NCBI GenBank assembly: GCA_011109175.1
Contig: RDEW01000043.1
Location: 248,001-312,000, forward strand
Length of the DNA stretch: 64,000 bases
Direction of reading: 5' to 3'
Source: Dicyema japonicum
Lineage: Eukaryota > Animalia > Dicyemida
Positions within the stretch are counted from its first letter, which is position 1. The number at the start of each line of letters is the position of its first letter. Shown here in pieces: positions 7,100 through 59,255 of this stretch. The translations under genes and the position numbers were made by a program. The notes beneath the pieces are model-generated. The model did no database searches. It saw nothing but the letters and a program-made list of their open reading frames with translations, and was not told the DNA's origin.

Positions 7100-7480
7100 A
7101 GGGTCTCCTTTTAGTTAGTTAAGTAACCCCAGCCTCACTAACTTGTAGGAGACTAGCCACTATTATGTAGGACGCAACAGATGTTTGTCGCTCTCATTGA
7201 TCGGTCAGTCCCGGTATTGTAGAGGAACATTGTGCCAATTCATGACATTCAAATAGGTGATTTGTTGTCAACACGTGGAGGTTGCAAAAGGGACAGAATC
7301 ATCGTATGTTGGTAGGTGTGGATGGTGGCCACATCGTAGACGAGCCAGGTTCACTCGTACGTCCCTCGGAAAATAGGATTCTTATTGGTCTATTAAAGGA
7401 AGGGGTCGCTGTATTATTTTACTGTCTTCGAGTCTTCGGATGCTTCTCGTAGAAACAAAATCGTGTATCTGTTTCTCCTT
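7100..7480 (-). mobile_element. 5'-truncated LINE 3' end; paralogue of the element at 10680-15450
   Basis: Visibly near-identical to 10680-10985 joined to 12503-12555. Confidence 0.8.
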
Positions 7481-7620
7481 TTGTTTGTGGAAACCCGAAG
7501 GCAGTGAGTGGATGACTTGGCGAAGAAATCCAATTTATTGTAATACTCTGAAATGCAATTAAATTAATTTAATTTTAATAATTTATTTCGTTATAAAAAT
7601 ATAAATATGAAGTCGAGACG

Positions 7621-8199
7621 ATGTTAAGGTTTAAATTATTAGTTTTAGAGCAGTTTTCTTCCTCAAGGAGGAACTTAATTAATGTGCTATTCGGATTTTG
7701 TATTTTTGAAAGACTCTGGAATTACGTGGGGAGTTTAAAATTGGTATAATTGAGTTCATATTTTAGCTTACCGGTGGTGCAATGATGCCAACATTTTACG
7801 GAGGAGATATTTTGGTTGTGAGATCAATATCTACTTATTTTTCATACCCCAATCCGTAAACTTATGTGACTAAAAGATTTAGTGGGGACATTGTGATCTT
7901 GAGATCTCCGGTGGACACCGAATCAACCCTGTGCAGACGAATTATTGCTTCAGAAGGAGAAATATTATGCAAAAATGGTATCACATTGGTGGTTGGTGGA
8001 TTATTTATTTTGGGTTCCACGTGGTCACATATGGGTCGAAAGTGATAACAATGACCAAACCCATGATTATAATGAACTTGGAGCTGTTCCAGTCGCTTTA
8101 ATACTCGGAAAAGTGGTTTATTGGTTTGACTTTGGCATTCATCGTAGTCTGAGAACTCACTCTGTGATTACTTCTCTAAAGTGGGCTCAAGAAGATTAA
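7621..8199 (+). CDS. IMMP1L: Mitochondrial inner membrane peptidase subunit 1-like (S26 family), catalytic residues substituted
   Basis: Spliced protein: ...NLINVLFGFCIFERLWNYVGSLKL|LTGGAMMPTFYGGDILVV...NP|GDIVILRSPVDTESTLCRRIIASEG...|VPRGHIWVESDNNDQTHDYNELGAVPVALILGKVVYWF...*. Introns at 7744-7766 (23 nt), 7856-7882 (27 nt) and 7989/7992-8013 (ends GG). The 5' end is uncertain: ATG 7621 needs a 20-22 nt intron plus a 1-nt indel. Confidence 0.85.
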
Positions 8200-8329
8200 T
8201 TTGGAGAAGTCATCATGTTTAATTGAGGCTATTTAACAGATTTTATTAAAATACTGTTTAATTTTGTTCTCAATAAATTTTTATTGATTTTTCACATTCA
8301 GGATGTTATGAATTTCCAATATTTTTAGG

Positions 8330-9300
8330 TGTATTCTACACTACTACAAGAAAAGCACTCCACAGATGTTCTCTTCAAATATGGGCTTGGAAGAGTGGAA
8401 TGATGTCATGATAGGAGATTCACATCACTTGCTCATTATGGAGGGTTGAGAAAATAACTACATGTGTCGTTAATTTCCTTAACAAGAGAGGTCCGCTTTA
8501 TACAGAAACAATGTGATCGTTTATTCGACGAACTGCCAGGAAGAAAATGGAGGATGAAAGCTAAAAACGATAAAAATCAATCTTTCTGGAAGTTATACAA
8601 AAACCTTATACTTTAAAAAATCCTGATTGAGGACAGACCATGCGACAAAAAGTTCTGACCATTTTCCGATACTTTCTTGTCGACTATCTGGAATTATATT
8701 TCTATGGTTTGAGCACGGACCTAGTTGCTGATGAAGAGAGGAGGTCAAATTCTTACTATTTACCTTATGAAGTGAGATACACCCTGCTGTGAAAAAATGA
8801 AAAAATAAGGCTATTGGACTTGATCATTTGAGAATGAAATTGTCTAAAGATACTATAATCTTTTTTGAGGCTCTCCGGAGACTCTTCGACGCCAGTCTAA
8901 GACTCGGATATATCGCACAGGACTAAAAACTATCAATGGTTCCTATCAAAAACCTAAGGACCCTTCTAGTTCACTTGAAAAATTCTAATATGTTCACTTG
9001 CAAAGATTATGGAAAGAATAAGTCACTTTTGAGACTGAATCAGTTTGACTTTCGGTCTTAATGGTACTGCGGTCGCTGCCTATTCTATCTCAATTCTGAA
9101 ATAGCTTTTAAATGTCACTTCAATGTCATTTTCCTGGATATCTTCAAGACTTTTGACAATTTATGAAATGATACCCCCATTGAACAACCTCAACGAGCCA
9201 GTAAACTGAATTATTTGTATGATCCTATCAAAGTTTCCCTATGTGGAATAAATTCGTTTTTGAGCCATGGACTATATATCTTTGGATCTACGATTATTTA
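8330..9300 (+). mobile_element. Highly degenerate LINE (APE-linker-RT) fragments
   Basis: Broken frames resemble GxDxI...WKxA.V.P..KP and QFDFR...T RT motifs. Confidence 0.35.
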
Positions 9301-10600: not shown

Positions 10601-10679
10601 GATATTTTTTTTAAAAATCACCATGAATTAAATTGTCTCCAAGAATTGACTTTTTGTTCTGGTTGAATGTTTCGTGGTT

Positions 10680-13600
10680 AGTTAGTTTATTAACCCCAGC
10701 CTCACTAACTTGTAGGAGGCCAGCAGCTATTAAGTAGGACGCAGCAGATTTTGGTCGCTCCCATAGATCAGTCAGTTCCGGCATTGTGGAGAAACGTTGT
10801 GCCAATTCATGACATTAAATAGGTGATTTGTTGTCAACACGTGTAGGTTGCAAAAGGGACAGAATCATCGTATGTTGGTAGATGTGGATGGTGCCCACAT
10901 CGTATACGAGCCAGGTTCACTCGTACGTCCCTCGGAAGAGAGGATTCTTATTGGTCTATTAAAGGAAGGGGTCGCTGTAATATTTGGTACTAAGACATTT
11001 GGCCGACAGACGTTTAGCCGACAATTCAATCAACCATAAATGATCAATAAATACACTATGTATTTTAATAACGGTAAAAAATTGAATTTTCACAAACCAC
11101 TCGTGGAAAGAGAAAACTTCTGCATGATGGCTATGCGTACATTATGGATAGACAGAGAGACAATGTCATATATTGGAGATGTGAGCTGAAAGGAAAATGC
11201 AAAGGCAGAGTAAGAACTGTTAACGAAGAACTTAATGGAACTATGACACCACACGAACATCCACCAAATGCAGGACGTTTACATGCGCTGAAAACCGTCA
11301 ATACGATAAAGAAGAGAGCGAGAGATTCTGAAGAAACTACATCCACAGTTATCCAAAATTGTTTAAACACATACCCTATTGATGCTCCAAAAAGAAACCC
11401 TTCCACGTACTGTTCGACGACAGCGTACAGATCAAATACAAGACGGTAATGTTCTAACTGATGAACTTAAAAGTACTCTCAGAGGAGATGATTTTTTGCT
11501 ACACGATAGTTATGGATTGCTTATATTAACAACAGCAAGAAACCTTGATCTTATGTCTATGAAAGAACATTGGTTATGTGATGGTACTTTTGATTCAGCT
11601 CCATTAGGTTTTCAGTTATATACATGTTGCATTATGTGAAACATGTACGGTTCCATTAGTGTACGCTATTGCTCGAGAAAATCTCAACAAATGTATGAAC
11701 AAATATTTTCAACACTGAAAGAGAAAAGGCCACAATTGAATCCACTATCATTTACCATAGATTATGAGCGAGCAGCGATCAATGCTATCAACAGAATTTT
11801 TCCAAATGCAAATGTGTATGGCTGCTACTTTCACTTTGGGCAGTGTTTATGGCGAAAAATACAAAATCTAGGACTGCAGGCATGGTATAATGACCCAGCA
11901 AATGCAAACTTAATTAAAAGTATTCAAGCACTGGCATTTGTTCCTGTACCTCAAGTCATTAAGAGTTTCTGAGCGCTCCTTCAAACTATAGATGACGAGA
12001 CTGATGACGTGTTGGGAGATTTTCTGACCTATTTTGAACAACATGGATCGGAGCTTTGCAACGTGGAAAGGGAAGAGGACCATCGTTTAGTTTGGAAATA
12101 TGGAATGTATACGACAGACAGGCAGAAGGCCTTTCAAGAACTACGAATTCACTTGAAGGATGGCACAGATCTTTTTCACAAAGAGTGTCTATAAAACATC
12201 CGACCGTTTGTCGGCTTGTTACAAAAATACGAAAAAAACAGTCGGAGTGGGAGCTCACAGTAGTACAAATGATGGTCGGAATAACAATAAGACAAGTAAA
12301 GAAGAAGTACCAGGATTTGAACAAAAGGATAAACAGCATTATTGAAAAATATGATGAATACACTCCAGTAGAATTTTTGACTGCGTTTTCTCATAACCTT
12401 TAAGTAAATGTTTTTATCTTAAATTTTATCTCTGAATTTTAAAACTAGAATTTCCTGTCGGCCTAATATCTGTCGGCCAAATGTCTGGACACTGTAATAT
12501 TTTATCGTCTCCGAGTCTTCGGATGCTTTTCTTAGAAACAAAATAGTGTATCTGTTTCAGACGACTCCTGTCATTGGGGATGGAAGGAATGGATGATGAC
12601 ATTCGAGACAAATCACTGGTTGTCATAATAATTTTCCTTATGTTTTGCGGTTTGCATAGAGAGTGGCAGGGATGTTCTAGGCTGTAGGCTTGGGAGAGAA
12701 ACTGGAGGACTCTCATTTCCAGACTGGAAAAATCTTTGACTCCCAATGTAGATGATCAACAGGAGTTGATCTGAGCATCCAGTAATTATCCTGAGCGCGA
12801 TGTTTTGTACTTTTTGTAGTTTGTCAATAAAGTAAGAGAGGCAGAGTTGACCAGCAACTTGCATATTAATAGTTGTTCGAATGAATTGTTTATGATGGTT
12901 AGGGCTTCTTTGCTTTGGCCAAAGGAATCTCCTGACACAGCTTTAAGTATGTTGATCTTGCGGGAGGCCTTTGTACATTGTTCCTCCACATGTTTAGATA
13001 AAGTTAGTATTTGGTCATAAATAACTACAATTTTTTGGGACGTTTCGTAACGGCGAGTGTATGTGCATGAATTGTTAAAATGGTTGAAAATTTAGTTGGT
13101 GGCGGTTGGACGTGAATACTGTGACCGTGGATTTCGATGGAGAGGGGGATAGGTGGTTTGCTCCAAGCAACTCTTCAAGAGTGTTCAAGTGGATCTGAAC
13201 ATCCTCTTTTGCTTCGTTGACGTCTATGTTTTCAGAGTCAATAATCAAGTAATCCGCATACAATAGGAGTAGAGTCTTGGAATTGGTTGAATGTCACTTA
13301 TGTTCAAGTTGAATAAGGTAGGTGACAAATTGGAGCCTTGAGAAATTCTATTTGGAAGGAGCATGTATTGAGATAGACATGACATAAATTTAACTCGACT
13401 AATTCTTATAAAGAGGAAATTTGTTAGCTAATTCTGAGGACGTAAAAAAATTCGAGATAAGAATTTTGTCACATAGCACTTGTCTTTATGTTCGATCAAA
13501 CGTTTTGGTTAAATCAATTGATGCAATGATACTCCGTTTGGAAGGATTATAATTGTTGAAAACAGTATCGATATATTGAGTTAGGTTAAGAGATGTGTTT

Positions 13601-22210: not shown

Positions 22211-22850
22211 ATTTGGAGTGGTATTGAATAGTTGAAAATCACTGTGATTGTATCAATCGCAATGGGTCCAAGGTGTTTTAGCAAAATACCAGATATAATC
22301 AGGCCCACATGAGAGGAAGAATTCATCCTCTTCAAACCTCACTGACATCTGAATGTGAGATAAAGTTGTTTCTGTAGAAGTGGAAACTAAACACACTTAA
22401 TTAGTTGTTTACTTTAACTTCTTTTTCGGTATATCCGGGGTTAATAAATAAATAAATTGTAGACGAAAAGTGCTCTAATTCAGGGCATTCAAAAAGGTGA
22501 TTTTCTATTAACTTGGAGAGGTTTCAAAAGGAACAGAGGTCAACAGTTACCTCATTTAGTTTACGTACGTAATTTGGTAGAAAGGGGTGTTGCCTACATC
22601 GTAGACATGCCAGGTTTACCTGGATGTCCCTCGGAAGAGAGGATTCTGATTGGAGAGGAAACCGGCGTAGTATTCGAGTCTTCGGATGGTTTTCGTAGAA
22701 AAAATTCGCGCATCTGTTTCAAACGACCTCTGTCACTGGGGTTCTCCTTGGAAAATTACTTTCATTTTTAAATTATCAAATTCGAAAATAGTGATTAAAT
22801 TAAAAACAGCCTATAAATATAAAATTAAATATCAATTTTATGTAGAATTT

Positions 22851-57385: not shown

Positions 57386-59255
57386 ATGTGTGGAATTTGG
57401 GCATTATTTGGATACAACCTTGAACATTCGCAGTTCATAGACACAGCCATGGAAGTGTCCCACAGAGGACCCGATTGCATGAGGTTTGAGACAATCAGTC
57501 AACAAAAAAATGCCTGCCTTTGTTTCCACCGATTAGCAGTGGTAGACAAAGTGTTCGGAATGCAACCAATGCGACTTTATGAGTATCCTCATTACTATTT
57601 GTTGTACAATGGAGAAGACTATAACTTCAGACAGGTTTATAAAAATCAATATTTCTAAGTTGGGTGACAAATATAATTTCAAATTTACCACAAACTGCGA
57701 TACCGAGTTTTACTTCATCTGTACGCATTTGGAGGAATCAAACTGATGACTGAAAGCCTCGATGGAGTTTTTTCCTTCTGCATATATGACGCTTTGGAGA
57801 AAAAGGTTTTCATTGGACGAGATACCTTCGGAGTTAGGCCGAGTTTTTATTTATACGATGGGAAGATGCTTGGAGTATGCTCGGAATTGAAAGGTACTCG
57901 TAAACTCACTCAGGCCTTTATCCATTGAAAAAATTCTGTAGTGAAGATTGTATTCTTGAACCGATAAAACCAGGATTTTATCATGAATTTGGTATTGATA
58001 ATGATGGAGTAACCACATTATTATCTACTACCAAATTTCACAAAATCGGGGATTTTCCACTCTACACGACTGTTGACTGCATTTTAGAAAATTTGAGTTT
58101 TTTTCATTTTTTAATTTTCTGAAAAATCCGATGTTTTATCGAACATTCGAAATCTTCTCACAGCCTCAGTGTCTAAAAGGATGGCTTCGGACAGAGAAAT
58201 AGGCTGTCTCCTCTCAGGTGATTCATTTGAGTTCTCAATTTTAGGGGGTCTAGATTCAAGCTTGATTGCTGCCTTGGTAAATGATGAATTAAAGAAATCA
58301 GATGCGAGGTATGAATTGCATACCTATACCATTGGATTGCCGAATAGTCCAGACGTCGAGGCCTCCAGATTGGTAGTGGATAACATTTCGCATTGTAGGT
58401 CGCCAAGCATATTAAAAGTCACCACCATGAAATTTTATTTACTGAACAAGAAGGCTTGGATGCCATTGAAGAGGTCATTCAATGTATTGAGAGCTACGAT
58501 GTGACAACAGTTAGGGCATCTACTGGTTAAGTGTTTGTTTTAGTGCCTTTTAGGAATGTACTTGATTAGCAAATGGATTTCGAAGTATGGAAAATCGATC
58601 GTCATTATGTCTGGAGAAGGAGCAGATGAACTGTGTCAAGGATATATTTATTTCAAAAACGCTCCAAATTGTAACGAGGCTCACAATGAGTCTCTTAGAC
58701 TATTAAACGACATTTATTTGTATGACGGACTCAGAGCCGACAGAACAACTTCAAAGGCTGGGTTTGGAAGACTATTTTAATTACAGACTTGAGCTTCGAG
58801 TTCCATTCTTAGATCATCGTTTTTCTGCTTATTACTTGTCTTTACCTGCTTCTTTGCGCTGGTCTGGTCCTAATGATATCGAAAAGAAGTTATTGAGAGA
58901 AGCCTTTGATGGTACGGGAATTTTGCCCGACGAGATTTTGTGGAGAAAAAAAGAAGCATTTAGCGACGGAGTGTCCCCACAAAAAAGATCATGGTTCAGT
59001 GTAATACAGGAATACATCGAAGATAGGGTTTCTTTTATCTATTCAAGTATATTCTAGGTAAACGATGAGGAACTAGCTATGGCTAATGATAAATACCCTT
59101 TTAATACACCGAAAACCAAAGAGGCCTTGTTTTATAGGAATATATTTGAAAAATACTATTCTGGTTGTTCTAGTGTGATTCCTTACATGTGGATGCCCAA
59201 ATGGTGCAATGCAAATGATCCTTCAGCTAGAATTTTAGAAAATTATGAGGCTTAA
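57386..59255 (+). CDS. ASNS: Glutamine-dependent asparagine synthetase
   Basis: [67 protein letters not shown] and MWMPKW. Eight introns of 25, 20, 25 (GT-TG), 27, 26, 28, 25 and 30 nt. One T is missing near 57708. Confidence 0.97.

Follow-up and report, generated by a model that had tools for sequence, protein, structure and literature searches.

The mitochondrial inner membrane peptidase (IMP) has two subunits, both of which are, to our knowledge, catalytic in every organism studied. A locus of the dicyemid Dicyema japonicum raises the question of whether one of them can outlive its own catalysis. The locus lies at 7621-8199 on the + strand of a stretch of 64,000 nucleotides of contig RDEW01000043.1, the whole of which is referred to below as the window. 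In an initial annotation, it was read as an IMP homologue in which Ala and Arg replace the catalytic Ser and Lys, and its product was interpreted as a non-catalytic subunit of the complex. The question has two parts, namely whether the product can still be an enzyme and whether the gene is still alive.

Gene structure and family membership

The window sequence holds four coding blocks on the + strand between 7621 and 8199, which are split by segments of 23, 27 and 25 nt. Exon 1 (7621-7743) encodes the predicted N-terminal hydrophobic anchor region and has an uncertain start; in the assembly, its reading frame is open from ATG 7621. Intron 1 (7744-7766, 23 nt, GT..AG, phase 0) lies four residues ahead of the nucleophile position, which is located in exon 2 (7767-7855) within box B, G-G-A-M-M-P-T. 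Intron 2 (7856-7882, 27 nt, GT..AG, phase 2) falls within the codon preceding G-D-I-V, and exon 3 (7883-7988) carries box C, G-D-I-V-I-L-R-S-P, together with box D, C-R-R-I-I, where the general-base position is found. Intron 3 (7989-8013, 25 nt, phase 0) sits directly ahead of V-P-R-G-H, starting with GTG and ending with GG. Exon 4 (8014-8199) encodes box E and the C-terminus. Its translation begins V-P-R-G-H-I-W-V-E-S-D-N-N-D-Q-T-H-D-Y-N and continues with G-A-V-P-V-A-L-I-L-G-K-V, and the frame closes at the stop codon TAA 8197-8199. As read from the sequence, a candidate polyadenylation signal, AATAAA (8273-8278, + strand), follows 74 nt 3' of the stop. The coding blocks of exons 2-4 contain no stop codon; for exon 1, an open frame from ATG 7621 depends on the CC version of the assembly, to which we return below.

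Searched exon by exon against Pfam, the coding blocks gave sub-threshold matches to S26 with E-values of 0.06 and, for exon 4, 0.009 (13.7 and 16.4 bits, against a gathering score of 22.9 bits). A family HMM was built from 60 IMP-type proteins, taken from the HMMER search and one of the profile searches described below, and the exons were scored on it one by one. Exon 2 aligned to HMM positions 36-58 (8.3 bits), exon 3 to positions 66-95 (26.1 bits) and exon 4 to positions 106-142 (48.5 bits), and the three are thus colinear on the IMP family. Exon 4, run as the query of an exhaustive HMMER search, retrieved IMP1/IMP2-like (S26) proteins with 41-61% identity across roughly 35-50 residues, plus one spurious match; the latter, a 1724-aa repeat protein, was the top-ranking one and was discarded. 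The closest relative of exon 4 is a canonical IMP2-like gene of a GC-rich eukaryote, with Ser and Lys intact, and was likewise set aside. In a feature-based Atlas search, PF10502 clusters were indicated for exon 4. A word-indexed protein search with exon 4, placed within a 98-residue stop-free reference, gave no candidate, a PDB sequence search with the same exon gave no relevant match, and two profile searches, with the exon rows aligned to IMP proteins, returned neither a dicyemid or flatworm orthologue nor a protein of the locus itself. Within the 64-kb window, there is no second S26 copy. Taken by descent, the predicted product is a member of S26 (PF10502), as its similarity over boxes B-E is both significant and colinear.

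Loop length and intron positions allow a finer assignment. The spacing between the nucleophile and box C is 26 residues here, against 26-27 in named IMP1 proteins and 31-37 in IMP2-type or longer-loop members. For the intron comparison, one IMP1-like protein of the annelid Paralvinella and one of the starfish Acanthaster were threaded on their own genes. Each of these genes has four introns. The first (phase 0) precedes the nucleophile by four residues, the second (phase 2) splits the codon ahead of G-D-[IV]-V, the third (phase 0) directly precedes V-P-[RK]-G-H and the fourth (phase 0) follows box E. Introns 1-3 of the Dicyema locus match the first three exactly in position and phase. The last of the ancestral IMP1 introns, which in the annelid and the starfish lies in phase 0 behind a V-F-Y-K-type position, is missing at 8110-8125, where the sequence reads through as V-V-Y-W-F-D-F-G. 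The gene model is validated by this agreement in position and phase, and descent from IMP1 is supported both by the agreement and by the 26-residue spacing. By gene structure, as compared with these two animal IMP1-like genes, and by loop length, the predicted gene belongs to the IMP1 (IMMP1L) orthologue group.

The putative N-terminal anchor segment L-I-N-V-L-F-G-F-C-I-F, from about 7675, has a hydropathy of 1.14-1.51, within the range of 1.03-1.64 seen in six true IMP proteins.

Loss of the active site

The fate of the active site was followed in an alignment of 139 IMP-type proteins of 140-240 residues, in which 17 columns are at least 90% conserved and aligned to residues of the window. 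Twelve of these near-invariant columns are retained: four in box B (G, M, P, T), two in box C (G, D), the R that follows the Lys, the P of V-P, two in GDN (D, N), the D of D-S and the G that comes next. The remaining five are altered. Ala (GCA 7779-7781) occupies the column of the nucleophile Ser, where it occurs in 0 of 122 relatives, and Arg (AGA 7935-7937) that of the general-base Lys, where it occurs in 0 of 139. The other three lie in box E, which reads S-D-N-N-D-Q-T-H-D-Y-N: the Gly of GDN has become Ser (8041-8043), the box E Ser has become Thr (8059-8061) and the Ser of D-S has become Tyr (8068-8070). Across 137 relatives, conservation at each of these three positions is 99-100%; the box has kept its two Asp and its Asn in the Dicyema sequence. 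At none of the five columns is the residue of the window seen in any of the 122-139 relatives.

Eight of the 17 columns can be counted as active-site columns on the basis of what is generally known about S26 enzymes; all five changes are found among these eight, and the other nine columns are unaltered. The chance that all five changes fall in 8 of 17 columns is C(8,5)/C(17,5) = 0.009, a figure that is indicative only, as the column classes were chosen after the data had been seen.

The substitutions at the dyad described in the initial annotation are accordingly borne out by the alignment to IMP-type S26 columns, and so is the erosion of box E, with its Gly and two Ser replaced. The human IMMP1L motifs that had been quoted for comparison match those of mammalian and fish IMP1 orthologues. 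The statement that yeast and human subunits are normally catalytic is also in line with the literature: all four carry the Ser-Lys dyad, according to a review in which the conserved C-terminal glycine of IMP is also described as vital for activity (PMC8835746). With five active-site residues replaced, and in view of what that review reports on the dyad and on the glycine, the predicted product is not a peptidase and would be unable to cleave peptides. It belongs to S26 by descent; as an S26 enzyme it does not qualify, the Ser, the Lys and an intact box E each being absent. In literature searches, no precedent was found for a natural IMP pseudo-peptidase.

The distribution of the changes also carries information about the history of the gene. 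Had the gene decayed purely neutrally since its inactivation, changes would be distributed over the conserved columns as a whole, and a divergence large enough to hit five of them should also have produced stop codons. Here, the only near-invariant columns to have changed are active-site ones, exons 2-4 are free of stops and V-P-R-G-H-I-W-V-E stands at the family consensus, which suggests that the fold was selected while the active site was released. From this one sequence, set against a family profile, we infer that the fold probably remained under long selection after catalysis had been given up, i.e., that the gene went through a period as a pseudo-enzyme.

Comparison with known systems helps to place the predicted protein. 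With IMMP1L and yeast Imp1 (MEROPS S26), it shares the order of boxes B-E, a putative N-terminal hydrophobic anchor, the spacing of 26 and, as judged from annelid and starfish IMP1, three intron positions and phases; it differs from them in the five replaced residues, the absent fourth intron and the GG end of intron 3. IMMP2L and yeast Imp2 were compared as well. The Ala after K-R-x-I and the Asn after D-S/Y are shared with some members of this kind (PMC8835746 and the family columns), but the stretch from the nucleophile to box C is five or more residues longer there.

A functional analogy is provided by the iRhoms, inactive rhomboids whose expression and function are proven. As in their case, a protease fold would have been selected after the loss of catalysis, presumably for a role in binding or scaffolding. 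The two differ in that fold and membrane topology are unrelated, and in that the dicyemid gene is known from DNA alone. A review of rhomboid pseudoproteases is cited in PMC13092810.

The sequencing reads, the start and intron 3

Whether the gene can still be expressed depends on details at its start and at intron 3, which were compared with sequencing reads. Three read sets, all from a single DNA sample, gave contigs that extend over 7533-8429, with k-mer depths of 32, 351 and 22. The sample may be the one from which the assembly was made, and agreement between the two therefore rules out assembly error rather than representing a second, independent individual. Over 7533-8429, the read contigs and the window differ at three places only: C>T at 8344, an extra T behind 7567 and an extra C behind 7660. 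The assembly is a merge of Illumina and PacBio assemblies and shows homopolymer deletions relative to the reads. The extra T and the extra C amount to about two indel differences per kb, a density that fits an under-polished long-read part of the merged assembly. Two further observations concern the reads around the locus. Just 3' of the gene, 8450-8462 is a small hot spot of indels and substitutions, at which runs from the same sample carry two versions and contigs end on both sides. For a small read run from 2017, the index gives 38% of the words sampled from the stretch, but the only place that its contigs match is the upstream repeat, at 7300-7475.

The extra C behind 7660, which turns CC into CCC, affects the start of the gene. 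It puts ATG 7621 out of frame and brings TAG 7646-7648 into frame; the first 13 residues of exon 1 as read from the assembly thus probably rest on a homopolymer error. The hydrophobic N-terminal segment sits downstream of this site. A candidate mini-intron of 22 nt with GT-AG ends (7629-7650, + strand), required only with the CCC version of the reads, may repair the start. It would join 7621-7628 to 7651 onward and give M-L-S-S-F-L-P-S-R-R-N-L..., with 34 residues ahead of intron 1, compared with 35 in Paralvinella IMP1. Other in-frame solutions exist, and chance rescues are easy with introns so short. A flatworm-type spliced-leader AUG was also considered as the start and rejected, as no evidence was found for trans-splicing in dicyemids.

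At intron 3 (7989-8013), the reads show no difference from the assembly and confirm its GG end. Between 7989 and 8040, there is no AG. The next one, at 8041-8042, leads straight into TGA 8043-8045, which is also where the frame stops if intron 3 is retained. When all GT/GC-AG pairs were enumerated, no pair was found that would splice box D onto V-P-R-G-H. Among the short ones, only introns at 8021-8042 and 8024-8042 are in frame; these delete the conserved V-P-R-G-H-I-W-V-E-S block and were rejected as the ancestral structure. In D. japonicum introns, GTa and AG are reported to be the only signals still conserved (PMC13644364), and intron 3 has neither.

The initial annotation had described the frame, the transmembrane segment and the intron structure as retained. 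This holds for the predicted anchor, whose hydropathy lies within the range of true IMP proteins, and for the intron positions and phases, which are ancestral. It does not hold for the end of intron 3, nor for the start, which is shifted by the extra C.

A second gene in the same window bears directly on the missing AG. The asparagine synthetase (ASNS) gene at 57386-59255, on the + strand, is otherwise well conserved and has eight introns of 25-51 nt, seven of which are GT-AG. The third starts at 58097, with the only GT in the scanned interval 58075-58109, and no AG occurs at 58097-58129. The piece from 58130 on aligns to residues 229-258 of human ASNS (E 0.004), and a 25-nt GT..TG intron fits the frame. 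This intron and intron 3 of the IMP1-type gene, both known only as genomic sequence, are alike in their length of about 25 nt, their T-rich 3' end, the final G that is kept, their place at a conserved intron position and the otherwise open gene around them; they differ in that one ends with TG and the other with GG. Since ASNS also needs an AG-less intron of about 25 nt, the GG end of intron 3 is not proof of gene death. Across the D. japonicum genome, the share of micro-introns that lack AG may be roughly one in ten. Either the spliceosome tolerates a missing AG or many genes are freshly broken, and the ASNS case would make tolerance at least as likely. As a separate observation, the ASNS reading frame is displaced by one nucleotide in a run of A at 57740-57742 and meets a stop at 57744-57746, which probably reflects an assembly homopolymer deletion like those at 7567 and 7660.

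Living non-enzyme or young pseudogene

Taken together, the locus is best explained as a living pseudo-peptidase, an IMP1-type gene that may have been kept as a non-enzyme and would still be expressed; we put the probability of this reading at roughly 0.45. Its selection history, the undamaged coding blocks, the AATAAA past the stop and the precedent of ASNS count for it. Counting against it are the lack of GTa and AG in intron 3, the absence of a canonical rescue of the frame, the loss of ATG 7621 in the reads and a high-copy repeat upstream. The repeat, recognized from its other copies in the window and from read depth, extends over 7111-7475 (no strand assigned), and its 3' edge lies 146 nt upstream of ATG 7621. 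Further copies of the family are found at 10678-10985, 12492-12558 and 22456-22720, and its read depth is 10-1000x that of the gene body.

The same features are open to a second reading, which has a substantial chance of being correct and stands nearly even with a living pseudo-peptidase: the gene may have died recently. Catalysis would have been lost first, perhaps with a period as a non-enzyme, and the acceptor of intron 3 would then have changed from AG to GG, possibly together with a frameshift at the start. What is left would be a young pseudogene that makes no useful protein, and the genome would be in the course of losing mitochondrial processing functions. A GT..GG intron at an ancient intron position, for which no canonical splice offers a rescue, is what such a history would leave behind. 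The TGA met both on retention of intron 3 and from the AG at 8041-8042, the displaced ATG 7621 and the repeat directly upstream point the same way. However, apart from the start of exon 1 in the version of the reads, the coding blocks show neither stops nor other damage. V-P-R-G-H-I-W-V-E, right beside the odd intron, is still at the family consensus, and any death must therefore be very recent. Moreover, the intact-looking ASNS gene carries the same kind of AG-less intron, and removal of a canonical intron of 22 nt can restore the start. On either reading, living or recently dead, the predicted product is not a peptidase.

The interpretation as a non-catalytic subunit given in the initial annotation can thus be followed part of the way. 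Catalysis is lost, through five residues rather than two, and the pattern of substitutions favors a selected non-enzyme; the integrity of the gene, given an intron 3 without AG and the state of the exon 1 start, is not established.

Two further readings fare much worse. The enzyme could still work by means of other residues, or Ala and Arg could be errors or rare alleles in a population that carries Ser and Lys. Arg is indeed chemically near Lys, and Thr is a conservative replacement for one Ser of box E. Nevertheless, GCA and AGA are found unchanged in the contigs of all three read sets, at k-mer depths of 32, 351 and 22, and the two codons are therefore not assembly errors. Ala cannot serve as a nucleophile, and a total of five active-site changes, to residues unseen among the relatives, would have to be accommodated; this reading is very improbable and largely refuted. 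Least probable of all, to the point of being negligible, is that the S26-like blocks are a chance resemblance or a mis-modelled gene and do not form one gene, a reading favored by the scores of single exons below the Pfam gathering score and refuted by three colinear HMM blocks, whose separators of 23-27 nt match two distant animal IMP1 genes exactly in intron position and phase.

If the gene lives as a pseudo-peptidase, a mechanism can be outlined. The product would keep the residues that determine the S26 fold and the N-terminal membrane anchor, by which it would be held in the inner membrane, its S26 domain lying in the intermembrane space. There, it could pair with a still catalytic IMP2-type subunit, either stabilizing it or holding and presenting substrates. 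The 25-nt intron 3 would be removed despite its GG end, and the gene would probably still be expressed. A remodelled IMP complex of this kind, in which a permanently non-catalytic, membrane-anchored IMP1 partners a catalytic IMP2, and in which the mRNA depends on a genome-wide relaxed, length-guided choice of 3' splice sites in micro-introns that allows for the GG-ending intron, is a tentative proposal that we consider somewhat less probable than not. The yeast IMP subunits stabilize each other, and the remodelled complex of dicyemids would be a natural counterpart. Cytochrome c1 is the classic IMP2 substrate. Dicyemid mitochondria retain cob and cox1-3 (PMC6543705), and cytochrome c1 should therefore still be needed.

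A naturally dead yet conserved IMP1, if true, would separate what the subunit does structurally from what it does catalytically and would show which IMP substrates a highly reduced parasite must still process. The locus is also a clean test of AG-less micro-intron splicing, as it combines an ancient intron position, conserved flanking codons and a read-confirmed sequence. If intron 3 is not removed, the locus is an ordinary young pseudogene and one more sign of shrinking mitochondrial protein processing in the lineage.

The surroundings of the gene are those of a repeat-rich genome with very short introns. The window has about 37% GC, many remnants of LINEs and DDE transposases and introns of 23-30 nt; the published D. 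japonicum genome has 36.7% GC, 49% repeats and tiny introns (PMC6736024). At 125-1345 on the - strand, the window also contains an uninterrupted ORF of 406 aa for a pogo/Tc5-like DDE transposase (DDE_1, E = 4e-41; HTH_Tnp_Tc5, E = 1.5e-13), and this transposon may be active or recently active.
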